The notes beneath the pieces were generated by a model. The model searched no databases. It saw only the letters and a program-made list of their open reading frames with translations, and had not been told where the DNA came from. A DNA stretch of 64,000 bases from Anaeramoeba ignava BMAN (lineage: Eukaryota > Protista > Anaeramoebae), in assembly GCA_028826165.1 (NCBI GenBank), contig JAPDFW010000136.1:372001-436000 (forward strand), written 5' to 3'. Positions 21,097 through 56,944 of this stretch are shown here, one piece after another. The position numbers and the translations under genes are program-made. The first letter of the stretch is position 1. The number at the start of each line of letters is the position of its first letter.

Positions 21097-24000
21097 ATGT
21101 CTAAAATTGATGAAATAATAAAAGCAGAATTTGAACAAATTCAAAAAAGAAGAAGAGAAGAAGAATTAAAAATCAAAATCAAAATCAAAATCAAAATCAA
21201 CTTCAAAATCTAAAAATGATAAAAATGATAAAAATGATAAAAAAGAATTTAATTTTGAAAACAAACAAACAAAAACAACAACAAGACGAACAAATACAAA
21301 CCCAAAAAAACAAAATAATTCAAAAAAAAATCAAAATAAAAGTCAAAATAGAAATGATTCTGAAAATAAAAATATTCAAAATAACCATAATTCCAATCAA
21401 AGTAAGAATAAATTTTATTTTATTCAATTTTATTTTATTAAATTTATTTTATTAAATTTATTTTATTAAATTTATTTTATTAAATTTTATTTTATTCAAA
21501 TTTATTTTATTAAAATTTATTTTATTCAATTTTATTTTATTAAATTTATTTTATTAAATTTATTTTATTAAATTTATTTTATTAAATTTATTTTATTAAA
21601 TTTATTTTATTAAAATTTATTTTATTAAATTTATTAAATTTATTTTATTAAATTATTTTTAATTTTTATTTTAATTTTTTATTTTTAAATTTTATTTTAT
21701 TAAATTTTTAAATTTATTTATTATATTAAATTTATTTTATTAAATTTATTTTATTTAAATTTATTTTATTAAATTTTTTATTAAATTTTTATTATTTAAA
21801 TTTATTTTATTTTTATTTATTTTATTAAATTTATTTTATTTAAATTTATTTTATTAAATTTATTTTATTTAATTTTTAAATTTATTTTATTAAATTTATT
21901 TTATTTAATTTTTATTAAATTTATTTTATTAAATTTATTTTATTAAATTTATTTTATTAAATTTATTTTATTAATTTTATTTTATTAAATTTATTTTATT
22001 TAATTTTATTTTATTAAATTTATTTTATTAATTTTATTTTATTCATTTTTATTTTATTAATTTTATTTTATTAAATTTAATTTATTAAATTTGTTTAAAA
22101 GATATCCCTGATCCAATTATTAACAAAAAACCAACAAGAGTTAAAAGTTTTGTTAAATTGAAAAAAAATCATTCTTTTGTTCCAACAAATCCATCAGAAA
22201 AAATTCGAGAAAAATTAATTGAATTAGGAATTCTTGATCCAGATTCAAAACAAGAACTAACATCAAATTTTCTTTCTGAAAAATTATCGCTTGAAAATAG
22301 ATCAGAATCTATAAAGGAACAAAACCCAAAAAAAGAAATAGTTCTTTATGATGATTATTATGGAACTCCTACTGATATTAAATCTGTTAAAGATATTGTT
22401 TTTCAATTTGAAAAAACAAAAAGCAATCCAAATATTGAATTTTCTCCTCCAATTCAAAAAAGTCAACCTATAAATAACAAAAAAATAGCAAAGCAAAGTT
22501 CACTTCAAGATTCAAAAATTTATCAAAATCAAAATCAAAATCAAAACCAAAATCAAAATAATATAAAATCACCACAAATAAAACCAGAAATTCTATTAAA
22601 ACTTCAAAATAAACTCGAAGAAGACCAAATTTCAGAAAATGATGATTCTCAAATTCTTGATAATTTCCAAAAAATTCTTGCTGAATATATTACTGATGAA
22701 AATGAAAATCAACAAATTAAAGAACAAAATGATCTAAATGATGAAAAATCAAAAAATAACAAAAAAGAAAACAAAGATTCAATTTTGGATGAATTTACAA
22801 AAGGAATTGAAGAACATTTAAAAGATGATAATAAAAAACATAAAAATCAAAATCAAAGAAAAATAACAAAAAAGAAAATAAAGATTCAATTTTGGATGAA
22901 TTTACAAAAGGAATTGAAGAACATTTAAAAGATGATAATAAAAAACATAAAAATTCTAAATCAAGGAATAATGATAAAAAAGAAAATAAAGATTCAATTT
23001 TGGATGAATTTACAAAAGGAATTGAAGAACATTTAAAAGATGATAATAAAAAACATAAAAATCAAAAATCAAAGAAAAATAATGATAAAAAAGAAAATAA
23101 AGATTCAATTTTGGATGAATTTACAAAAGGAATTGAAGAACATTTAAAAGATGATAATAAAAAACATAAAAATTCAAAATCAAGGAAAAATAACAAAAAA
23201 GAAAATAAAGACTCAATTTTGGATGAATTTACAAAAGGAATTGAAGAAAATTTAAAAGATGATAATAAAAAACATAAAAATTCAAAATCAAGGAAAAATA
23301 ACAAAAAAGAAAATAAAGATTCAATTTTGGATGAATTCACAAAAGGAATTGAAGAAAATTTAAAAGATGATAATAAAAAACATAAAAATCAAAAACCAAA
23401 GAAAAATAATGATAAAAAAGAAAATAAAACAGATATTCCTAATCAAGAAACTAAAAATAAAATAGAAAATCAAGTTAAAGAAAAGGATGAAGATATAAAA
23501 CTAGAAGATATGTTAGAAAAGGAAAAAAAAGAAATTGAACTCAGACTAAAATCAATTTTGGGAAAAGATTATTCTCCAAAATCCAATAATCAGATTTCAA
23601 TTCCCAAAAAAATGGAAATGAAAAAAGAAGAACCTAAAGAGACTGAATCAAAAAAAGAAGAAGATAAAGAGATTGAACTAAAAAAAGAAGAACCAAAACC
23701 GAAAAAATTAGTTACTCAAGCAACTGCATTAATTAATTATACTGCAAAAAGAGATGTTGAATTGTCTTTCAAAAAAGGAGATATTATTACTGTTCTTGAG
23801 AAATCGTCAACTGGATGGTGGCAAGGAATAACAAAAAATGGAGAAATTGGTATTTTTCTTTCTGTATTTGCTTCTGTTAAAGAAATGTTAATAGATGATG
23901 ATGGTTCAGATTCTTTTGAAAATAAAAAAAATAATATAAATGATGAACAAATAAAAACGAAAGAAAATCAAGATCAAAATCCAAATAAAGAAAATTCAGA

Positions 24001-27000
24001 TGATGAAGATATTTATGAAATTGAAGAAATTAAAGAAAATCCAAATAAAGAAAATCCAGATGATGAAGATGATGAAGATATTTATGAAATTGAAGAAATT
24101 AAAGAAAATCCAAATAAAGAAAATTCAGATGATGAAGATGATGAAGATATTTACGAAATTGAAGAAATTAAAGAAAATCCAAATAAAGAAAATTCAGATA
24201 ATGAAGATGATGAAGATATTTATGAAATTGAAGAAATTAAAGAAAATCCAAATAAACAAAATTCAGACGATGAAGATGATGAAGATATTTATGAAATTGA
24301 AGAAATTAAAGAAGATCCAAATAAACAAAATTCAGATAATGAAGATGATGAAGATATTTATGAAATTGAAGAAATTAAAGAAAATCCAAATAAACAAAAT
24401 TCAGATGATGAAGATAATGAAGATGATGAAATTGAAGAAATTAAAGAAAATCCAAATAAACAAAATTCAGATAATGAAGATGATGAAGATATTTATGAAA
24501 TTGAAGAAATTAAAGAAAATCCAAATAAACAAAATTCAGATAATGAAGATGATGAAATTGAAGAAATTAAAGAAGATCCAAATAAACAAAATTCAGATAA
24601 TGAAGATGATGAAGATATTTACGAAATTAAAGAAATTAAAGAAAATCCAAATAAACAAAATTCAGATGATGAAGATGATGAAGATGTTTATGAAATTGAA
24701 GAAATTAAAGAAGATCCAAATAAAGAAAATCCAAATAAACAAAATTCAGATGATGAAGATGATGAAATTGAAGAAATTAAAGAAAATCCAAATAAACAAA
24801 ATTCAGATGATGAAGATGATGAAGATATTTATGAAATTGAAGAAATTAAAGAAAATCCAGATAATGAAGATGATGAAGATATTTATGAAATTGAAGAAAT
24901 TAAAGAAAATCCAAATAAACAAAATTCAGATGATGAAGATGATGAAGATATTTATGAAATTGAAGAAATTAAAGATGATAAACAAAATATAGATAATGAA
25001 GATGATGAAAGCGAAGATGAAAGCGAAGATGAATATGATGAGCATCAAAATGATATTAAAGCAATTGTTATTGAAAATTATAAAGGAGTTAATGATTCTG
25101 AAATTTCTTTAACAAAGGGAGATATTGTTTATATTTATGGAGATCTTGGACAAGGATGGGCTCAAGGAGAAACTAAAGATGGAATCATAGGAAAATTTCC
25201 TTTAAAATATGTAGAATATATTGACAAAACACAAGATATCACAAATAAAGAACTAAATGATCAAATCACAAAGGAAACAACATATAACACCACAAGCAAA
25301 AAATCCAAACACAAAAAAGAACGCCAAAAAATAACGGAAACTTATGAAAATTATGAAGATTACGATCCAGATTTGGATCATGAAAACGATCCAAAAGTTC
25401 GAGCTTTATCAGACTATACTCCACAAAGAGATAATGAATTATCATATAAACAAGGCGATATTCTTTATGTCACTGGCCAAAGTGAAGTTGGTTGGTGGCA
25501 AGGAGAAACAAGAGATGGTCTTATTGGTATTTTTCATTCTCAAAATTTTGAAGTTGTAGATGAGGCTTCAAGAATCAATTTAAATAAATTCCAGGAAATT
25601 TCTGGTTTTGAAATTATTCCTGTTGAAATTCCAGATCAGGTTTCAACTCCTGATCATTTATCGAATCCAGATCAATCTCAAGAATCAAATCAAACACAAG
25701 ATCCAATATTATTTACATCAACGTATATGAATAATATTTAATTATAATATTTAATTATAATATTTAATTATAATATTTAATTATAATATTTAATTATAAT
25801 ATTTAATTATAATATTTAATTATAATATTTAATTATTACATTTATTTATAATATTTATTTATAATATTTATTTATAACATTTAATTATAATATTTATTTA
25901 TAATATTTAATTATTATATTTATTTATTATATTTATTTTTAACATTTGATAATAATATTTAATTATAACATTTACTTATTATATTTAATTATAATATTTA
26001 TTTATAATATTTAATTTTAATATTTATTTATTATATTTAATTATAATATTTAATTATAATATTTAATTATAATATTTATTTTATATTTATTTATTTTATA
26101 ATATTTATTTATAATATTTAATTATAATATTTTAATTTTAATATTTATTATATTTAATTATAATATTTAATTATAATATTTAATTATAATATTTAATTAT
26201 AATATTTAATTATTATAATATTTAATTATAATATTTATTTTATTTACATTTTATTTATTTAATTATTTATTTATAATATTTATTTATAATATTTATTTTA
26301 TAATATTTAATTTTAATATTTAATTTATTATATTTATTATGTTTTATTATATTTATTTATATATTTTTATTATAATATTTAATTTATAATATTTAATTTA
26401 TAATATTTAATTATAATATTTATTTTTATAATTTAATTATAATATTTATTTTTATTTATTTATAATATTTAATTATAATATTTATTTTTAATATTTATTT
26501 ATTATATTTATTTATAATATTTATTTATAACATTTATTTATTACATTTATTTATAATATTTAATTATAACATTTATTTATTATATTTAATTATAATATTT
26601 ATTTATAATATTTAATTATAATATTTAATTATAACATTTATTTATTATATTTAATTATAATATTTATTTATTATATTTAATTATAATATTTAATTTTAAT
26701 ATTTAATTTTAATATTTAATTATAATATTTAATTATTAGTTCAATTTATTCATATCAACCTCAATCAGAAACTGACTTAGATTTTGGGATTGGAGAAGAA
26801 ATTCAAATAATGGCACAAGATGATTCTGGTTGGTGGTATGGAAAAAATAAAAATCAAAAAAAAGGAATGTTTCCGTAAGTCAAATTTAAAATTAAAATTA
26901 AAATTAAAAATTAAAATTAAAATTAAAATCAAAATCAAAATTAAAATTAAAATTAAAACTAAAATTAATATTAATATTAAAATTAAAATTAAAATTAAAA

Positions 27001-27410
27001 TTAAAAATTAAAATTAAAATTAAAATTAAAATTAAAATTAAAATTAAAATTAAAATTAAAATTAAAATTAAAATTAAAATTAAAATTAAAATTAAAATTA
27101 AAATTAAAATTAATATTAAAATTAAAATTAAAATTAAAAATTCTTTAGAGGAAATCATTTAGAATATTTTCAAGATTTCCAAAGACTTGTTACAGAATCT
27201 CTTTTTATTCAAGAATTCCAAAAAAAATCACGTTGTATTGCTATTGATAATTATTTACCTCCAAAAAATTCAAAATCACAATTAAAAATTGAAATTGGTG
27301 ATATTTTTGAAATTATTTCTCCTCAAGAAAAAGGATGGATTTTGGTTAAAAATTTAAAAACAAATCAAGAAGGTTTTGTTCCTGAATCTTTTATTCAAGA
27401 ATTTTTGTAA
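21097..27410 (+). CDS. Adaptor protein with five SH3 domains and two internal tandem-repeat arrays; multi-exon, with apparent homopolymer frameshifts
   Basis: SH3 motifs: ALINYTAKRDVELSFKKGD..GWWQG; IENYKGVNDSEISLTKGD..GWAQG; ALSDYTPQRDNELSYKQGD..GWWQG; SIYSYQPQSETDLDFGIGE..GWWYG..GMFP; AIDNYLPP..GD..GWILV..GFVPESF. Introns 21402..22101 and 25723..26739, plus one at about 26876-27149. TAA at 27408-27410. Confidence 0.88.
21410..22090. repeat. Intronic 14-bp satellite (aaatttattttatt)
   Basis: Tandem units fill the first intron of the SH3 gene. Confidence 0.85.
22760..23430 (+). repeat. Coding tandem repeat, ~120-bp unit (KENKDSILDEFTKGIEEHLKDDNKKHKN...), about 6 copies
   Basis: Near-identical units visible in both DNA and translation. 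Confidence 0.9.
23980..24980 (+). repeat. Coding tandem repeat, ~60-69-bp unit (DDEDDEDIYEIEEIKENPNKQNS), about 15 copies
   Basis: Visible in ORF 22892..25741. Confidence 0.9.
25730..26735. repeat. Intronic 13-bp satellite (tataatatttaat)
   Basis: Tandem units fill intron 25723..26739. Confidence 0.85.
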
Positions 27411-27713
27411 TCAAAATCAAAATCAAAATCAAAATCAAAATCAAAATCAAATTCAAAATCAAAATCAAATTTAAATTCAAAATCAAAATCAAAATCAAAA
27501 TCAAAATCAAATTCAAAATCAAAATCAAAATCAAAATCAAAATCAAAATCAAAATTAAAATCAAAATCAAAATCAAATTCAAAATTCGTTTTGATGTTTC
27601 TTTTCTTTTCATTTCATTTTATTTTATTTTTTTTTTGTTCTTGATAATTTTGATGTTTTTTCATTTTTTTTCATTTTTTTTCATTTTTTTTCTTTTTCAA
27701 AAATAAAACAAAA

Positions 27714-30700
27714 ATGAATCGAAATTTAATTACTTTTCCTTTTTCTTTAAATTTAAGAAAACAACTAATTTCAAATGGTTTATATTTTGAATCTGATTTA
27801 AGTCAACTTTCTGAAAATCAAAATCAAAATCAAAATGAAAATCAAAATGAAAATATAAATCAAAATCAAAATGAAAATCAAAATATAAATGAAAATCAAA
27901 ATCAAAATCAAAATCAAAATCAAAATCAAAATCAAAATCAAAATCAAAATCAAAATCAAAATCAAAATATAAATCAAAATCAAAATCAAAATCAAAATCA
28001 AAATCAAAATGAAAATCGAAATCAAATTCAAAATATAAATCAAAATGAAAATCAAAATCAAATTCAAAATCAAAATCAAAATCAAAATCAAAATCAAAAT
28101 ATAAATCAAAATAAAAATCAAAATCAAAATCAAAATCAAAATCAAAAATCAAAATGAAAATCAAAATCAAAATCAAAATCAAAAAATCAAAATGAAAATC
28201 AAAATCAAAATCAAAATATAAATCAAAATATAAATCAAAATCAAAATGAAAATGAAAATCAAAATATAAATCAAATTCAATATCAATATCAAAATATAAA
28301 TCAAATTATAAATCAAATCATAAATCTAGATCAAAATCAAAATCAAAATATAAAATCAAAATGAGAATTTAAACAAATTACTACCATTTTCAAAAGAAAA
28401 AATTGAAAAAATTCAAGAAATTGAAAATACGATAAAAAGTTTTGTCAAAGGATCAACAGGACAAGAAGAACTAAATCAAGAACAAAATCAACAACAATTT
28501 ACAACATTATCACCTTCATTTGATTCTCTTCTTCGAGGAGGGATTTATACAGGAAAATTATTAGAAATTTGTATGTGAATGAAAAAAGAAAAAAACAATT
28601 TTTAAAAGAAGAAATTTTAAATATTTTTTTAAATTGTGTTTTTTTTTTTGGATTTAAAGGTGGATTATCTGGAACAGGAAAATCTCTTCCAATTGATTCA
28701 TTTGTTGTAACAAAGAATGGTTTTTATCCAAACGGCAAGTTATTTCCTGGAATGTTTGTGTGTAATTCAAAAGGTGGAGTTTCAAAAATATTAGCAATTT
28801 TTCCTCAAGAAAAAAAACTTCCTGTTTATAAAATTATTTTTAGCAACGGAGATTCTGTTGAGAGTTCTTTGGACCATTTGTGGGTCGTTAATAATGAATT
28901 GGAAAATAAAAAACAACTTGTTAATACGCAGTATCTTTATCAAAAAGTGATGGATGAACGCAATTTATATTCATTTTCAATATCAACACCCAAAATTGTG
29001 TTTTTTTCTGAAAAAAAATTACCAATTCATCCTTATTTATTTGGCTCTTTTATTGCGTATTTGGATTGCTCTTTTCAATACCTAAATTTTCAACAAAATA
29101 ACTCGCTTGTTTCTATTCGTTTTTTATTGAAATTGTTGGGAAAATATAGTTGGAGAAAAAAAGAACATTTGGAATTGATTCAAAAATTGATTGCAAATCA
29201 AAAGCAGAATTTGAACCAAAAAATTAAATGCTCAATTCCAAAATCAACAATATTTAATTCAAAGAAAAACAGATTCAGTTTTATTCAAGGATTGTTTGAT
29301 TTTTATTATGAAAAAAATTATATCAAAATCGATGACAAAACAAATCATTTGGTTCATTTTATAAACAAGAAAAAAATTGGAGAAAAACTTAAAATCATTT
29401 TGGAATCTTTTGGAGGGATTTCCACAATTAAAAAAAATTATTCTGAAGGAGAAATCAATCAATGGATTTGTGAAATTCAACACAAAAAAATTTGGAAGTT
29501 GTTCAAAATTTATCGCGATGAAATGAAAGAAAAAACAAGGAAAAAAATAAGAACAATTCGTCGAAAAATTTCGCAAATTGTTTTTTCAAGAAAAGTTGAA
29601 TGCTTATGTGTATTGCTTGATTCACCAGATCATCTTTATTTAACAAATCATTTTGTAGTAACACATAATACCCAATTAGCAATGCAACTCTCATTAAGCG
29701 TTCAATTACCACTTTCTTATCATGGACTGAATGCAAAATGTGTTTATATTGATACAGGAGCTGGTTTTTCAATCAGTAGAATGGCTGAAATTGCTGATGG
29801 AATTTCAAATCGATTAACTCAAAATTTTTATTTGAATAATTTTTCACAAATTGATTTACAACAAGTTTCCAATTTGAAACGTGATTTTATTCATAATATT
29901 TATTATTATTCACTTCATAACCATTTTGCTCAACTTGCTATTTTGAATATTCTTCCAGATTTATTAAAAAAGGATCCACAAATCAAGCTTATAATTTTTG
30001 ATAATATATCTTTTTTTTTCAAAAAATCAGTTACAGGATGGGAAGAATCAACACAGATAATTGGGTATTTTGGAGAATTCTTATTAACATTAGCAGCTGA
30101 ATATCAAATTAGTGTATAATTTATTAATAAAATTGAATTTTATAATTTATTAATAATAATTGAATAATAATTTAATAATAATTGAATAATAATTGAATAA
30201 TAATTTGAATAATAATTGAATAATAATTTTATAATTGAATAATAATTGAATAATAATTAAATTAATTGAATAATAATTTAATAATAATTAAATAATAATA
30301 ATTGAATAATAATAATTGAATAATAATTGAATTTTATAATTGAATAATAATTGAATAATAATTTATTAATAATTAAATAATAATTGAATAATAATTAAAT
30401 AATAATTGAATAATAATTGAATAATAATTGAATAATAATTGAATAATAATTGAATAATAATTGAATAATAATTGAATAATAATTGAATAATAATTTAATA
30501 ATAATTGAATAATAATTTAATAATAATTGAATAATAATTTAATAATAATTGAATAATAATTTAATAATAATTGAATAATAATTGAATAATAATTTATTTA
30601 TAATTAATAGATTGTTATTATAATTTAAAATTTAATAATAATTTAATAGAAATTGAAAAATTTAATAGATTGTTGTTTTTGTCATCTTTAGGAAATTGAA

Positions 30701-30962
30701 AATGTTTTTCCATCTTTAGGTAAAATATTATTTCTTATTTATTATTTATTATTTATTATTTATTATTTATTATTTATTATTTATTATTTCTTATTTCTTA
30801 GGTGAATTATGGCAACATTATCCAAATCAACAATTAATTCTTTTTCAAAAATTAATTGAAAAAAATCAAAAAGAACTTAAAAGACAAGCAATTCTTACAA
30901 AAAGTTCATTTCTTCCAAAAAAATTAATTGAATTTGAAATTAAAAAAGAAGGAATTTTTTAA
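27714..30962 (+). CDS. RAD51C: RAD51 paralog C, interrupted by an intein at Walker A; multi-exon with an N-terminal QN tract
   Basis: N-terminus MNRNLITFPFSLNLRKQLISNG resembles RAD51C. Core after removing intron 28571..28659 and the intein: FTTLSPSFDSLLRGGIYTGKLLEICGLSGTGK|TQLAMQLSLSVQLPLSYHGLNAKCVYIDT. Walker B is LIIFDNI. C-terminus PSLGELWQH...RQAILTKSSF...FEIKKEGIF, with TAA at 30960-30962. Confidence 0.88.
28683..29669 (+). mobile_element. Intein (329 aa) with degenerate LAGLIDADG homing endonuclease; class 3 WCT signature
   Basis: In-frame insert between GTGK and TQ. Block A SLPIDSFVVT; block B SSLDHLW; block F ECLCVLLDSPDHLYLT; block G VVTHN followed by extein +1 Thr. Endonuclease remnants are PYLFGSFIAYLD, FIQGLFDFYY and LKIILESFGG. 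Confidence 0.95.
30150..30600. repeat. Intronic 12-bp satellite (aataataattga-type) in RAD51C
   Basis: Tandem units follow the GT donor near 30114. Confidence 0.85.
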
Positions 30963-32579: not shown

Positions 32580-35500
32580 ATGGAATTAATTATTTTATCA
32601 AATAAATTATTATATCAAACACTTCAAAATCAAGATAAAAGAATTAAATCAGATAAAATGCTCGAAATTTTAATAAAAAATAAAAATAAATTTGAAAAAT
32701 TTCTTTTACTTTTTGATAAAAAAACAGAAAATCAAAATACAATCAAAATAAATGAACCAATTAAATTTTGTGGAAAGGAAATCATTGTTGATGAAAATCA
32801 AAAGCAATTTATACAAGAAATAAGCAAGAAATTAGATATCAATGAATTTACTAGTTTTGGAATGTTCCATTTATTTCTCAATATAAATCAACCAAATTTA
32901 ACGAACAAAATTGAATATAATGAAAAAACACTGAATCAAATATTCCATTTTTATTTAAAAGAGCGATTGTATTTGCTCAAGGTGTTTTATATATTGCTCA
33001 AAATTGCGCAAGATCGAAATCATCTTTATAATATTTCTGCGGTTGAAATTTTAAGAAAAACACCAACTCCAAAATCAACTATTCAGACTTTATTGTCTCA
33101 AATTGAATCAAATATCAAGAAAATTGCCGGTTTCCAACATACTCAAGTAAATTCTAAAGAGGACACAAGAAAATGGATTGACGAGTATGTTTTGGAGCAG
33201 GAAGTTTTGATGGAAATCATTTTCGCAATTATATATGCTCGAGCAGAAAATATTGATTCGGAATCAATTGTTATAATTTACCACAAATTCGCGCAATATT
33301 CCTTCTCTCAAACATTGCAATATTCTTTAGTTTCTGAAAAACGCAAAAGTAGCATTATAAGAACAGGTTTTCTTGCAATTCTGATTCTGATTGGAATTCT
33401 AAATTTGGACGAGTTTTTAAAGCGCATATTGAAATACGAAAATGAGGACAAAGAGGAAGAAATCAATTTGGAAAAACGCATCAAAATTCCCGATTTTTTC
33501 CCAGAGGTCTTTTTCCAAGAACAGAGCCAGAAGATAATCTGCCAAATATTGGATTCCTATCACGATTCTCCATACAATGGCCCTGTCATTTTGACTTGGT
33601 CAGTACTTTTTTGTAAAGCTACTGAGTTCGATCATAAATATGATCCTCTCTGTCAAAAATATGCTTTGAAAGCTTCGCAAATGGATTTTTTGGCATTTCT
33701 TCTGAAAATAATTCTCAGCGATGAAATCAATCAAGACAACTCAAATTTATTGTATTACAAAACCATTTTGAATTCCTTACTTGGACTTCTTGTTAATTTT
33801 ATCGATCTTCCCAATTGTCCCTTTAATGACCAAATTGTGGATCTTGCTTGCCAAATATATCACGGGCATCCTCAATTATGCAATAATTTTTGGGAATTTT
33901 TTGGCTCGAATTCTGAGTTCATTCCTTTGGTTGTTCATCTTGTTGATAATTTTCCACAGAACATTCTTGTATTCAACAAATTCATGGCCTCTTTGTGTTC
34001 AACATGCGAGTCATCATCTCGAGTGATTGATTTTCTTTCGCAAATGCGCAATTTCCAACAACCCATTTCTTTTGATGATTACGATGATAATTTCAATGAA
34101 TTTTTGCAAATATATCCTGATGGAAATAATCAACGTGTGGAGGTTCTTCAATCGTTTCATCTCCAAGGAATAAAAATTCCAAAAGGAACAAATGGACGTA
34201 TTCTTTCTGACAGTGAGATATCCAAAAACAGAGAGGATGAAATAATTTATCCTGATCAATTAGGGTTTTGGGTGATTGAATGGGATATCCCAGTGATTGA
34301 GCTTTTTTCAGGAATGATACAAGATTTATTGATGGAAACAAATTTTCAGCATTCAAATATTTCTGGGGAATTAGAACAAATCACATCAGTTTTTGAACTT
34401 ATTTATAATATCATTTCGTGCGGAGAACACAAAGAAAACCAACTTGAAAAAAGAATTGAAACTGAAGGGAATCATTTAAGCAATTTAAATAATTCAAGGG
34501 ATTTGAATAATAATAATAACAATAATAACAATAATAATAACAATAATAATAACAATAATAATAATATTGATATTGATATTGATATTGATAATGATATTGA
34601 TATATCATCTCGAAAAAAAAATATTGTTATAAAACTCCTAAAAAAAATGTGGCCATTCATCTCTAAATTTCAAAATGATGATTCTCTTGATCCCTCTTCT
34701 TCTTTGCTTCAAATTGCAATGCCTCAGTTTTTCCAAATTTTCCAGAAAGTTGCAACGCATAATATTTCATCCCCAATTTTATATCGTCTGCTTTCTTTCA
34801 GTCTTAAATGCATCTACGAATTCGCACTTTATAGACCCTCAGATGTTTGGGTTCTTATGAGTCAATTTGAATTTCTGCCTCAAAACACATCTATTAACAA
34901 CATGGAATCAAACACATTGCAATTTGTCCACGAGCAATATCCGGATATTTTGAAGAATTTACTGATGTATGTCGAGTGTGCACAGGGAAAATATTCACTT
35001 ACAATCTCGTTTCTCAGAATTTTCCATTTGTGCTTAAAAGACTATTTATCATGGGTTGTTTATCCTGATAGAAAAGAACTTTCAACATCGAACTTAAAAC
35101 AGACAAAAATACCTTATACAGTTGTGGAAATGCAGGGCATTTTGACTTATATTTGCAACAATATTTTTTCAATGTTTCGGACATGGAAATATGCCAAATT
35201 GAAGCACAGATGGCTCATTGGCATTTATATTCTTGATATTTTCAAGGAAATTTTGGATCACTTTTCATTTTCAACAAACGAATCAAAAAGAAGCAAATGG
35301 AGTTACGATACAGAATGGAATTATAACAAATCAGATGAAATGAGCACAGAATCGGAGTTGAACGAAAACTCAATCATGGCGCTGAGAAAATATTTGATGA
35401 ACCATTTTGTTTATAACACCCAAATGCACTCGGAACTTTTCCAGCTTGTTTCTTTAGGGCCATCTACAATCAAGAAAATATTCACAAATAAGAAAATCAC

Positions 35501-38500
35501 GGAAGGAAAATTTGTAGAAAAATTGGTGCAAAATTCACTGGATTTGTTCGATGATATTTTGCTGTATTGCAGAGAGGAATTCGAGGTTATAACCCCAATG
35601 GAAAATGCAATATTCGAAGATTCGACTCTTTCAAATGATGGCAAATCAACATTGATTCAAACATTGGTTCATTATATCGGGTATCCTTATTGTGATTCCA
35701 TCCCGCTATCTGCAATACGAATACTGGCTCATCTTTCTGAAATTTCATCCAAAGAACCGAGCCAATCAACAGCATTTATTTCCAATTTGTGGAGCGAGGC
35801 ACATTCACTCCGTAATTTCCTTCTTTACAAATTATTCAGCGACAGAGAGTTCCCACAAGTCAAAACGGAAATCATTAATTTGATCAAAATATCTTTGGAT
35901 TCAAATACAGGCATTGCTGTTATTTTTCTCACTTCGCTGGATTTTTTCGACCAGAACGAAATTCAAGAACCTCTTTTAAATGAAGAAAAAAGCGAGAAAA
36001 TAACAAGCAAACAGAAAATATTATCGCCAAATAGCGAATTGAACAGAGAGGAATCAAGATCAAAATTGATTGATTTTATTATTGAATTTGTTTCCAAACC
36101 AGAAAACTTCAAAGAATTCCCGAGATTGTTTTCAGTGATTGTGGAATTGATAATCTCAATTTGGGAACAAGGAAAAGACTATTTTGCAGCCATTTCGCAG
36201 ATGAACAATTTATCCAAATTTTGGGATAGTATTTTTTTCATTTTGGAAAAATCGGAAACATCAAAAGATGAAGAGAATGGATATTATTATGAAAGTTTCC
36301 AGAAGCAAATCCGAGGCGCAGTTTTCAGATTGATATCAAGAAATTTAATGATTTTAAATCCTGAATTTCAACACGAATCCTTCAGTGCCCATTTCAAAAG
36401 ATTTTTGCAGCAAAACACATCCAAACAGAACGCGGATTTGATTTTTAATTTCAAGCAAATTTTGAAGCATGCTTCCCAAATGAACCAAGAAATGGAGCCT
36501 CCAGAGGTCCAAATTGAAGAAGGACTTGATCTATCTTCATTTTTAAATCAGCCCACAAAACGTATTTATGGCAAAAATTTTTTGTTCAATATCGGGTTGG
36601 TCAAGAAAACTCTTGCGAAATATTTTAATAGCGAAAAACTCGAGCATCAAATCAAACAGCTTGAAATACTCAATTCCTTCTGGTCGCGTGTTGATAGCGA
36701 GTTTTTATTGTTCCGTTCATTTGCACAGTTTGTCAAGGTTGTTTTGGATAAAAATCCAGAAGTTTTAGTGGAAATTTGGCAATCTGATGAATTATTTCAA
36801 ATTTGGCAATCGAAATTAAGCAATATTTTGGAATCGAATAAATTGCTGAATTTTTTGAAATCGAACGAACTTACACGAATTTGCGGATCGAATGAGCTTT
36901 TGAAAATCTGCAAAACAGATCAAATTCTGCAAACACAAGAATTTAATGAACTTATAAAAGTTTGCGAACCAGAGAATTTATTGAAAATATTCAAATCAGA
37001 CGAATTTTCGAAAATTTGCAAATTGAAGGAATTATTGAGCATTTACGAATCATTTTTCACAGTGAACACGGATAAATCACTTAAAACGAGTGTTTCAAAA
37101 CAAACAATCATGAAAATCCACGACAAAAGCGATATTGGAGTTTTTCTACTGAAAAAAACACCTCGACTCCAAACATCAAGCGTTCTTTTGCCGTCAATAA
37201 CAAAAACAATGGGGATTTTGATCCCGTCAATGCATCTATCACCAAAACTAGCCGATGATGCTCTTTTCAATCTTTTAATCGCAGAAATCATTCTCATCAA
37301 TAACGAGATTGAGCATACAGAACAATTTTACGAAGCCTGTTTTGAAACACTTGAAATTGTTTGTGGAATCATTTCTTCAGGTTTCGAATACATCCAAAGA
37401 AGAAACTATTGTTTGTCAATCGTTGTTTTTGAGCAGTTAATCAAAAAATTGATTATCCAAAACCAGAATCAAAAAACCGATCCAAATCAAAATTCAAATT
37501 ACAAAAAAATTCTAATTCAGCAAAAAAGTTTGGAGTTTATTCACATGAAAAGAATAATCCCAAAAATATTCGAGTTATTAACGCAATTCATCAAATCATT
37601 GACAACAGAAAACGCTGAATTCAACGATAGTATCCAATACACAAACGAAACAATCAATTTGATTTCGAATATGAATTCATCATTTGAAAAAGAGAATTTA
37701 AAAGAAAATTTAAAAGAAAATTTAAAAGAAAATTTAAAAGAAGATGAAAAAAACATTTATCATGAAACACGTTCTGAAATGATTGAGAAAACATTCTCAT
37801 TCACAGAAGCACTATTGAATGTGCTTCTTATTTTGGCGATGGATCCAAGCTCTGCAGAAATGCTGAGCGAGAACGGAATAATCATTCTATTTACTTCTCA
37901 ATCAATTGATTTATTTTCATCATTTATTGTTTTGCCAACTTATTTAAATACACCAAACCCGACCATCTTTATTCGTTCCAAATGGAGCCGTTTTTGGAAC
38001 AAAATCTTGCTCATTGTATCAGCAATGATTGGATCGCTTAATCACAACATGAATTTTCTGAAGCAAGTGATCCAATTTGTTTCTGTTCATTATCAACGGA
38101 TTTCAAACGCTTTTTCTTTTCGCGGGACTTATATCGCAAGAAATCACGCACTTTCGATCCCGCTCACAATACACCAGGCGCAGGAAGAGGAGATGCACAA
38201 AATCATGCATCAGCAAGGCGCCAATTATCTCCATGAATTGACGCTTGGCTGGCTTGAAGAAATGGAATCATCAACTTTATTTCTTTCTGTTTTTTCCGAA
38301 CTTGGTTTGTCCGAATTTAAGAATACAGACGGCACCAACTTCGCTAATTTCGTTGAGCTTTCTTCCCGCCTCATCGCACACACAGAGTATTTATTATCGT
38401 CTTTGAATTACGAGAACATCTCAAAGCCAGTGTCTTCAATTGAAACCCAAATGGATCTTTCCGAGTTTTGCGGTTTGGTTGAAGAAAAAATCCTGATCAT

Positions 38501-38996
38501 TTTAAAAAATGTTATCACGTTTCTAAGAAAAACAATTCCTCAAATGAATTCAAGGAAATTCTTGTTATTCGAACCCTTTCTAGCACCTGTCAGATCGGTT
38601 ATAAATACCGAAAATCAATCTTCAATGGGAATGCTTATTTTGACCCAAAATTATTGTCTTAGTTCTTTACAAGGAAAAAATGTCAGTTTTTCAAATAGTA
38701 AATCACAAATCCAATATAATTCTCTCAAGCAAGACTGTCTCCAATATGTTTATGAAAATTCTCTTTATGTTTTGATTTCGCATTTTGTTATTTATCACTT
38801 GAAATATCCAAATCAAATTAGCAATGAATTAAAAAATGAAATGGAAAATGTTGTTTTTAAATTTTATGAATATTGTAAATCAATTAATAACACTTTGATT
38901 GGAAAACAAAAAGTTCAATTTGCTCAGAATTTATGTGATATTGTTTTGGAATGTATTGGAGCAAGATTTGATTCAGATCGTGGATTATTATTTTAA
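32580..38996 (+). CDS. NUP188: Large intronless alpha-solenoid protein, probable nucleoporin Nup188 family
   Basis: 2138-aa ORF. The N-terminal ISKKLDINEF...FYLKERLYLLKVF pattern, GPVILTW, ECAQGKYSLTISFL and TWKY....RW..G segments resemble Nup188. The family call is from recall, not a search. Confidence 0.65.
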   Translation: MELIILSNKLLYQTLQNQDKRIKSDKMLEILIKNKNKFEKFLLLFDKKTENQNTIKINEPIKFCGKEIIVDENQKQFIQEISKKLDINEFTSFGMFHLFLNINQPNLTNKIEYNEKTLNQIFHFYLKERLYLLKVFYILLKIAQDRNHLYNISAVEILRKTPTPKSTIQTLLSQIESNIKKIAGFQHTQVNSKEDTRKWIDEYVLEQEVLMEIIFAIIYARAENIDSESIVIIYHKFAQYSFSQTLQYSLVSEKRKSSIIRTGFLAILILIGILNLDEFLKRILKYENEDKEEEINLEKRIKIPDFFPEVFFQEQSQKIICQILDSYHDSPYNGPVILTWSVLFCKATEFDHKYDPLCQKYALKASQMDFLAFLLKIILSDEINQDNSNLLYYKTILNSLLGLLVNFIDLPNCPFNDQIVDLACQIYHGHPQLCNNFWEFFGSNSEFIPLVVHLVDNFPQNILVFNKFMASLCSTCESSSRVIDFLSQMRNFQQPISFDDYDDNFNEFLQIYPDGNNQRVEVLQSFHLQGIKIPKGTNGRILSDSEISKNREDEIIYPDQLGFWVIEWDIPVIELFSGMIQDLLMETNFQHSNISGELEQITSVFELIYNIISCGEHKENQLEKRIETEGNHLSNLNNSRDLNNNNNNNNNNNNNNNNNNNNIDIDIDIDNDIDISSRKKNIVIKLLKKMWPFISKFQNDDSLDPSSSLLQIAMPQFFQIFQKVATHNISSPILYRLLSFSLKCIYEFALYRPSDVWVLMSQFEFLPQNTSINNMESNTLQFVHEQYPDILKNLLMYVECAQGKYSLTISFLRIFHLCLKDYLSWVVYPDRKELSTSNLKQTKIPYTVVEMQGILTYICNNIFSMFRTWKYAKLKHRWLIGIYILDIFKEILDHFSFSTNESKRSKWSYDTEWNYNKSDEMSTESELNENSIMALRKYLMNHFVYNTQMHSELFQLVSLGPSTIKKIFTNKKITEGKFVEKLVQNSLDLFDDILLYCREEFEVITPMENAIFEDSTLSNDGKSTLIQTLVHYIGYPYCDSIPLSAIRILAHLSEISSKEPSQSTAFISNLWSEAHSLRNFLLYKLFSDREFPQVKTEIINLIKISLDSNTGIAVIFLTSLDFFDQNEIQEPLLNEEKSEKITSKQKILSPNSELNREESRSKLIDFIIEFVSKPENFKEFPRLFSVIVELIISIWEQGKDYFAAISQMNNLSKFWDSIFFILEKSETSKDEENGYYYESFQKQIRGAVFRLISRNLMILNPEFQHESFSAHFKRFLQQNTSKQNADLIFNFKQILKHASQMNQEMEPPEVQIEEGLDLSSFLNQPTKRIYGKNFLFNIGLVKKTLAKYFNSEKLEHQIKQLEILNSFWSRVDSEFLLFRSFAQFVKVVLDKNPEVLVEIWQSDELFQIWQSKLSNILESNKLLNFLKSNELTRICGSNELLKICKTDQILQTQEFNELIKVCEPENLLKIFKSDEFSKICKLKELLSIYESFFTVNTDKSLKTSVSKQTIMKIHDKSDIGVFLLKKTPRLQTSSVLLPSITKTMGILIPSMHLSPKLADDALFNLLIAEIILINNEIEHTEQFYEACFETLEIVCGIISSGFEYIQRRNYCLSIVVFEQLIKKLIIQNQNQKTDPNQNSNYKKILIQQKSLEFIHMKRIIPKIFELLTQFIKSLTTENAEFNDSIQYTNETINLISNMNSSFEKENLKENLKENLKENLKEDEKNIYHETRSEMIEKTFSFTEALLNVLLILAMDPSSAEMLSENGIIILFTSQSIDLFSSFIVLPTYLNTPNPTIFIRSKWSRFWNKILLIVSAMIGSLNHNMNFLKQVIQFVSVHYQRISNAFSFRGTYIARNHALSIPLTIHQAQEEEMHKIMHQQGANYLHELTLGWLEEMESSTLFLSVFSELGLSEFKNTDGTNFANFVELSSRLIAHTEYLLSSLNYENISKPVSSIETQMDLSEFCGLVEEKILIILKNVITFLRKTIPQMNSRKFLLFEPFLAPVRSVINTENQSSMGMLILTQNYCLSSLQGKNVSFSNSKSQIQYNSLKQDCLQYVYENSLYVLISHFVIYHLKYPNQISNELKNEMENVVFKFYEYCKSINNTLIGKQKVQFAQNLCDIVLECIGARFDSDRGLLF

Positions 38997-55263: not shown

Positions 55264-55339
55264 CGGATCCTTCAGGAATCGAACCTGAAACCTCCCAAAT
55301 TTTGCTAAATTAGGTGTTGTACCATTCAACTAAAGATCC
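55264..55339 (-). tRNA. tRNA-like gene copy 1, 11-nt anticodon loop (UUUAGCAAAAU), isotype undetermined
   Basis: Reverse complement folds as GGATCTT-TA-GTTG-AATGGTA-CAAC-A-CCTAA-[TTTAGCAAAAT]-TTGGG-AGGTT-TCAGG-TTCGATT-CCTGA-AGGATCC-G. A and B boxes are intact and a poly-T terminator follows. Confidence 0.8.
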
Positions 55340-56867: not shown

Positions 56868-56944
56868 TGGATCCTTCAGGAATCGAACCTGAAACCTCCT
56901 AAGTGACATGTGAATTAGGTGTTGTACCATTCAACTAAAGATCC
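56868..56944 (-). tRNA. tRNA-like gene copy 2, 12-nt anticodon loop (UUCACAUGUCAC); Val(CAC) if a 5-nt intron is removed at 37/38
   Basis: Same body as copy 1, with a perfect CCTAA/TTAGG anticodon stem, discriminator A and poly-T downstream. Confidence 0.8.

Follow-up and report, generated by a model that had tools for sequence, protein, structure and literature searches.

A Class 3-Type Intein in the Walker A Motif of the RAD51C Gene of Anaeramoeba ignava

The RAD51C Locus

The window analyzed here is a stretch of 64,000 nucleotides from Anaeramoeba ignava BMAN (assembly GCA_028826165.1, contig JAPDFW010000136.1, positions 372,001 to 436,000 of the forward strand), and all coordinates given without a contig refer to it. 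Its plus strand carries a RAD51C gene whose Walker A motif is interrupted by a 987-nt in-frame insert. The probable true start of RAD51C is an ATG at 27714, skipped by the public gene model, which opens a frame of 33 codons (27714-27813). These codons presumably correspond to the N-terminus of human RAD51C, which we take them to resemble; searches of the PDB and the Atlas with the 34-aa piece beginning at this ATG gave no match. They are followed, within the N-terminal domain, by an AAAATC microsatellite of approximately 91 copies encoding poly Asn-Gln (27814-28362), in which odd A-runs near 28144, 28181, and 28352 produce a net one-base frameshift. The frameshift is likely an assembly error, because other gene copies in the assembly are broken in a similar manner; a damaged RAD51C gene is the alternative. 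Coding sequence for the N-extein continues at 28363-28570, up to the first base of a Cys codon preceding the P-loop, and has a weak PDB match to the RAD51/DMC1 family (E 0.012). The Cys codon is split by an 89-nt, phase-1 spliceosomal intron with GT-AG ends (28571-28659), lying 23 nt upstream of the insert, and removal of this intron yields LLEIC-GLSGTGK, the upstream half of the P-loop. The N-extein side of Walker A (C-G-L-S-G-T-G-K) occupies 28660-28682, the insert 28683-29669, and the C-extein exon 29670-30113, the latter running from Thr+1 to past Walker B (Walker B Asp at 30000-30002). Further downstream the public model places a short exon with a doubtful 5' boundary (30692-30720) and a last exon with the stop codon (30802-30962), and it lacks the conserved strand that comes after Walker B. 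The interval 30601-30721 holds no clean exon for this strand; it contains instead a tandem pair of similar short segments, each with TCTTTAG at its end, which suggests an assembly stutter or a missed micro-exon.

The protein is deposited in GenBank as KAJ5066843.1, 'intein-containing DNA repair protein rad51 precursor [Anaeramoeba ignava]' (UniRef100_A0A9Q0L6E0). An 1804-aa protein recovered by profile search (P0018) maps residue for residue onto the window and is the same record. The deposited model joins an upstream SH3-domain gene to RAD51C via an 'intron' at 27407-28439 that skips the in-frame stop of the SH3 gene (27408-27410), the ATG at 27714, and the Asn-Gln repeat, and it includes the N-extein from 28440 onward. 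It is probably a chimera of a multi-SH3 gene (22104-27410) and RAD51C. Its intron and intein boundaries are identical to those read here: it uses the 89-nt intron, and it keeps the 987-nt insert in the protein.

The C-extein (148 codons) is closest to RAD51C among PDB sequences (8gj8, E 2e-20; human RAD51C residues 132-277, E 8.5e-13), compared with E 3e-4 for yeast RAD51 when the exons were searched one by one. These matches agree with the nuclear RAD51C host named in the initial annotation. UniRef names the host RAD51 homolog 3, RAD51 and other paralogs are separate genes in the genome, and a genome search found RAD51C in single copy in the A. ignava assembly. The first residue of the C-extein aligns with human Thr132, the Mg/nucleotide-binding Thr of Walker A, confirming both the GK|T insertion site and the proposed role of the +1 residue; in the human protein Thr132 binds nucleotide together with Lys131 (PMC7614784). 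Homologous-protein searches with the C-extein and with the intein by itself, subject to limits on search length, gave no match and thereby neither an A. flamelloides RAD51C nor a transcript-derived version. Elsewhere in the window, two tRNA-like genes with four-base anticodon calls lie on the minus strand (55264-55339 and 56868-56944), and an intronless ORF of 2138 aa (32580-38996), with a GC content of 32%, above its surroundings, encodes what we take to be a large nucleoporin (Nup188-like).

An Intein between the Walker A Lys and Thr

The insert comprises 329 stop-free codons with a calculated mass of 38.9 kDa. It begins with Ser (TCT) directly after GLSGTGK and ends with His-Asn directly before TQLAMQL, and its in-frame excision restores the conserved host P-loop motif; on re-reading, the coordinates, terminal residues, and rejoined P-loop first reported proved exact. 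Its anatomy is that of a HINT splicing domain with an inserted, degenerate LAGLIDADG domain: an N-terminal splicing region (residues ~1-115), a LAGLIDADG-like middle (~117-290), and a C-terminal splicing region (~291-329). Blocks A, B (with its His), F, and G (His-Asn) are all present, together with Thr at +1. A spliceosomal intron was considered and rejected, the insert having no GT start or AG end, an open frame, and all splicing residues.

The HMM search suggested as a check was run and gave a weak match to PF14890 (E 0.0023), below the cut-off, and no NCBIfam intein model matched. A PDB sequence search aligned the ends of the insert on both sides with gp41-1 and class 3 DnaB inteins, and a profile search with the family collected 5,917 proteins at E<1e-30. 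The AlphaFold model (pLDDT 88.8, pTM 0.88) has a predicted HINT fold, and Foldseek matched it to PI-SceI, TliVMA/VMA inteins, PI-PfuI, and class 3 DnaB inteins at E values from 2e-13 (PI-SceI, the best) to 3e-5, with TM scores by target of 0.76-0.82 for the class 3 DnaB inteins. With the host motif restored, the splicing blocks present, and a HINT fold predicted, the identification as a true intein stands. The GC content of the intein (26%) is close to that of the host exons (27.5%), which is consistent with long residence. Because a 39-kDa domain sits between the Walker A Lys and Thr, RAD51C would be unable to bind nucleotide normally prior to splicing, in keeping with the initial annotation, which held that RAD51C cannot bind ATP until it is spliced; splicing is needed for an intact P-loop.

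Splicing Residues and Intein Class

The residues expected to carry out splicing are Ser1 in block A (28683-28685), Ser62, Asp64, His65, and Trp67 in block B (28866-28883), Cys309 at position 4 of block F (29607-29609), the position of the class 3 nucleophile, and Thr327, His328, and Asn329 in block G (29661-29669). Class 3 inteins are defined by a Trp-Cys-Thr (WCT) triplet (PMC2807308), which is complete in the RAD51C intein as Trp67 (B12), Cys309 (F4), and Thr327 (G5), a signature that the initial annotation did not mention. The triplet is strongly conserved among 188 environmental relatives (Cys309 in all 188, Trp67 in 183, Thr327 in 185), and His65, His328, and Asn329 are kept in 183-188 of them. 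The numbering of His65 and Trp67 equals that of class 3 DnaB inteins, Ser62 is as in the MP-Be DnaB prototype, in alignments with class 3 DnaB inteins Cys309 falls on their block F Cys, and the +1 residue is Thr, where class 3 inteins have Thr or Ser. The WCT residues, the His65/Trp67 numbering, Thr+1, and a P-loop site are common to the class 3 inteins MP-Be DnaB, M. smegmatis DnaBi1, and M. chimaera DnaB1 (PMC2807308, PMC6195587, PMC7664689), and the class 3 structures 6bs8, 6rix, and 6riy match the predicted model of the RAD51C intein. Unlike the class 3 DnaB inteins, which start with Ala or Pro, the RAD51C intein starts with Ser, resides in a eukaryotic nuclear host, and retains a decayed LAGLIDADG domain.

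The first residue complicates the assignment. Ser1 occurs in all eight family members in the genome and in 9 of the 188 environmental relatives, the others having mostly Ala or Pro. [quoted passage not shown] The RAD51C intein is, on its sequence, class 3-type by signature, short of a proven class 3 member, because Ser1 breaks the original definition and leaves a class 1 route formally open. The internal Cys309, and not Ser1, probably starts splicing.

Decay of the LAGLIDADG Domain

Both LAGLIDADG motifs are degenerate. In the first (29031-29066) Tyr126 has taken the position that the catalytic Asp holds in the G-D-G of relatives, and in the second (29289-29309) Tyr208 replaces the Asp of D-T-D-G. 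Both motifs are intact in 153 of the 188 environmental relatives, and neither is kept in any of the nine Anaeramoeba inteins examined. In Pfam the RAD51C intein has no match to PF14528 (LAGLIDADG), which the environmental relatives match clearly. An active homing endonuclease is rejected on the two Asp-to-Tyr replacements, and with both catalytic acids lost the RAD51C intein, as judged from these motifs, no longer qualifies as a homing element. It had been portrayed as a selfish element that depends for its homing on the very pathway whose gene it occupies; the replacement of both Asp residues, set against their retention in most relatives, speaks against this, and since the nuclease motifs have decayed the irony of an element disabling a pathway that it needs would be, at most, a matter of its history.

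Relatives within and outside the A. ignava Genome

A genome search found relatives at 27-39% identity. Their hosts are dynein, at AAA1 and AAA3 and in three gene copies, together with two helicases of the DEAH type, one Ski2-like helicase, and two kinesins. Every family member found reads GK|S...THN|T. Two of the sibling hosts are also named intein-containing in GenBank, and one of the dynein inteins is still present in P0012 (EukProt), a protein derived from a transcriptome. Ser1 and Asn17 are common to all eight inteins, each occurring in 5-6% of outside relatives. Three full-length trees, made by quick and FastTree methods and containing long branches, unite the eight Ser1 inteins (SH-aLRT 98, 100, and 98), with the RAD51C intein, in two of the trees, as the second-longest branch of the family. 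A 143-column tree, mainly of the splicing domain, places the other seven together (96/91) and the RAD51C intein outside them without firm support; a single clade of eight is not rejected by the AU test (p-AU 0.48).

A. ignava BMAN is reported to contain 103 inteins, most of them in replication, recombination, and repair proteins (PMC10710043). Those assigned to cluster 1 have an atypical first residue and a class 3 appearance, occupy the P-loop in proteins that are not related to one another, and fall together in the tree (Gallot-Lavallee et al. 2023, PMC10710043, Fig. 6B). The RAD51C intein shares with cluster 1, whose hosts include dynein and kinesin, the P-loop site, the class 3 signature, the atypical N-terminal residue, and phage relatives, and on these sequence features it very probably belongs to that cluster; RAD51C is not named in the main text of the paper (PMC10710043). 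A literature search combining intein and RAD51C found nothing relevant. The element counts among the 103 inteins that had previously been reported and annotated in this genome, and is ordinary for it. Any novelty claimed for it falls away, as KAJ5066843.1 was already named intein-containing and the element belongs to the Anaeramoeba expansion that the initial annotation itself cited.

Outside the genome, relatives are inteins of PhoH, AAA+, RecA-like, and DnaB proteins, with 31-34% identity over their full length (P0049, P0043, P0050, P0028, P0065). These phage-type metagenomic inteins have the same architecture and mostly read GK|A...THN|T/S, differing from the RAD51C intein in their usual N-terminal Ala. 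Cultured phage records gave 229 matches, the best at 27.6% identity, and two RecA-like hosts of related inteins, at the two loci looked up, sit in phage-like replication modules.

Several other loci in the genome deserve mention. The Ski2-like helicase gene (L005, G000:C18 near 57815) has an intron upstream of its intein, inside the P-loop Gly-Lys codons, and dynein AAA1 (L002/L003/L007) has an intron 35 nt upstream. In a CHD/SNF2 gene (L018, G000:C71 near 847450) a spliceosomal intron lies exactly at the extein-intein junction (GK, intron, Ala1 WCT intein), and this Ala1 intein branches apart from the Ser1 family. The L004 helicase intein recurs as a second, frameshifted copy at the end of a contig (L020, L043, L045, L046; G000:C103:385-1282), which may be either a pseudogene or a poorly polished duplicate. 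A PCH2/TRIP13-like ATPase carries in its P-loop a Cys1 intein (L044, G000:C46:651331-652314) that is of a different family at a similar site.

Introns and Inteins among the RAD51 Paralogs

The GK|T site is occupied differently in other members of the host family. In both RAD51 genes (G000:C137 near 130900, L021, L026; G000:C55 near 655980, L022, L025) a phase-0 spliceosomal intron falls precisely at GK|T, and in two further paralogs (L027, L028) the site is empty. Intron gain has been proposed, from other gene families, to block intein homing (PMC10710043). An intron in both RAD51 genes and an intein in RAD51C fit this proposal, and the arrangement seems to be a new example of intron/intein exclusion.

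Splicing Route, Origin, and Persistence

We consider it highly probable that the RAD51C intein is of class 3 type, has a phage origin, and belongs to a Ser1 family that spread among the P-loops of unrelated A. ignava ATPases and then lost endonuclease activity. By extension from class 3 biochemistry, the mRNA would retain the 987-nt insert, and Cys309 would attack the Lys-Ser1 peptide bond to give a branched thioester at block F. The N-extein would then be transferred to Thr+1, Asn329 would cyclise with the assistance of His328 and free the 39-kDa intein, and an O-to-N acyl shift would produce the native GK-T P-loop. Splicing of the RAD51C intein is most likely constitutive. The intein probably persists not through homing, but because only an exact deletion of the 987 nt leaves the single RAD51C gene working.

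The RadA intein of Pyrococcus horikoshii, with which the RAD51C intein had been compared, is a Cys1, class 1 intein. It occupies the equivalent site, the P-loop end of a RecA-family ATPase (point c1; PMC4513877, PMC5238726), and is a mini-intein that lacks a nuclease domain, whereas the RAD51C intein has a degenerate one. Control of RadA intein splicing by native exteins and ssDNA has been published, the ssDNA response depending on contacts with the RadA extein, and unrelated inteins have invaded the RadA P-loop site independently (PMC4513877, PMC5238726). Among PDB sequences the RAD51C intein matched no RadA intein at E values up to 0.1-1. Kinship with the Pyrococcus intein was therefore rejected, the relatives being phage-type inteins and the seven other Ser1 P-loop inteins of the same genome. 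The analogy with a RadA ssDNA switch reduces to a common site, given the phage-type, WCT-bearing class 3 character of the RAD51C intein.

Two alternatives concern how this intein splices and where it came from. Restoration of Ser1 as a working nucleophile, with splicing by the class 1 route, alone or beside that of class 3, and with WCT as a relic, would account for the invariance of Ser1 in all eight genome members although their relatives have mostly Ala or Pro, and it is quite unlikely: Cys309 and Trp67 are just as invariant, position 7 of block B holds the Ser of the class 3 prototype rather than the nucleophile-priming Thr of class 1, and a change from Ala to Ser takes one base and could be neutral. 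Ser1/Thr1 WCT inteins reportedly depend on the block F Cys (Tori and Perler in 2011 are said to have found this). Three WCT inteins with Ser1 or Cys1, untested, were already known (PMC2807308), a point on the side of a Ser1 route. As to origin, the RAD51C intein might have come on its own from a phage RecA-like gene through near-allelic homing, or have been the entry point of the family. In sixteen of the best environmental matches the host is a RecA-family protein whose intein occupies the same GK position, two quick trees place RecA- or DnaB-hosted inteins beside the Anaeramoeba clade (support 97 and 82), and the splicing-domain tree pairs the RAD51C intein with one RecA-hosted intein (97/26). 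Against this, the sister group shifts with taxon sampling, another full-length tree giving two other hosts; support is not firm or is unstable; the RAD51C intein is basal in none of four trees; its best BLAST matches are PhoH and AAA hosts; and the AU test (p 0.48) fails to separate it from the family. A separate arrival is unlikely, and so is a founding role, appealing as that idea is.

The other two alternatives concern what the intein does to its host. Co-option as a switch that responds to ssDNA, redox state, or metal and holds RAD51C inactive until needed draws on the site shared with RadA point c, on the six Cys residues of the RAD51C intein in an anaerobic host, and on the class 3 intein DnaBi1 of M. 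smegmatis, which is redox-locked through its block F Cys (PMC6195587). By this analogy a redox lock would be no less plausible than an ssDNA trigger. Such a switch has only a small probability, since sequence kinship with the RadA intein is lacking, the RadA lock relies on its own extein contacts, and the same intein family occurs in dynein, kinesin, and helicases, where targeting of P-loops explains the site without regulation. The elaborated version, in which a nuclease-dead Ser1 class 3 intein is kept as a redox- or DNA-responsive RAD51C switch in an anaerobic eukaryote, both RAD51 genes being shielded by intron gain at GK|T, is very unlikely. The remaining possibility is that RAD51C is itself decaying, as a pseudogene or a non-catalytic scaffold, and that the intein has been freed from the need to splice. 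A Gly codon (GGA, 29757-29759) stands where human RAD51C has the catalytic Glu161, mutation of which abolishes BCDX2 ATPase in humans (PMC7614784). GGA is one base from GAA, and the substitution may reflect either a genuine loss of ATP hydrolysis or an error in a single base; it bears on activity and not on orthology. The net +1 frameshift in the upstream repeat, the missing clean exon after Walker B, and the long branch of the intein point the same way. Decay of the host nonetheless has a very low probability, as RAD51C is single-copy, 484 codons stay open in a region of 26% GC, every splicing residue is kept while the nuclease motifs have decayed, and similar one-base errors break other copies in the assembly (dynein copy L007, helicase copy L011).

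Significance

With the protein recorded in GenBank as intein-containing and the class 3 family of P-loop inteins published, the discovery value of the RAD51C intein is small. It is a worked example of a eukaryotic counterpart to the RadA/RecA point c insertion, reached independently, and as a natural intein with both Ser1 and WCT it is suited to testing which nucleophile starts splicing. Among the paralogs of one genome it also offers a clean case of intron/intein exclusion, with an intron in both RAD51 genes, an intein in RAD51C, and an empty site in two others.
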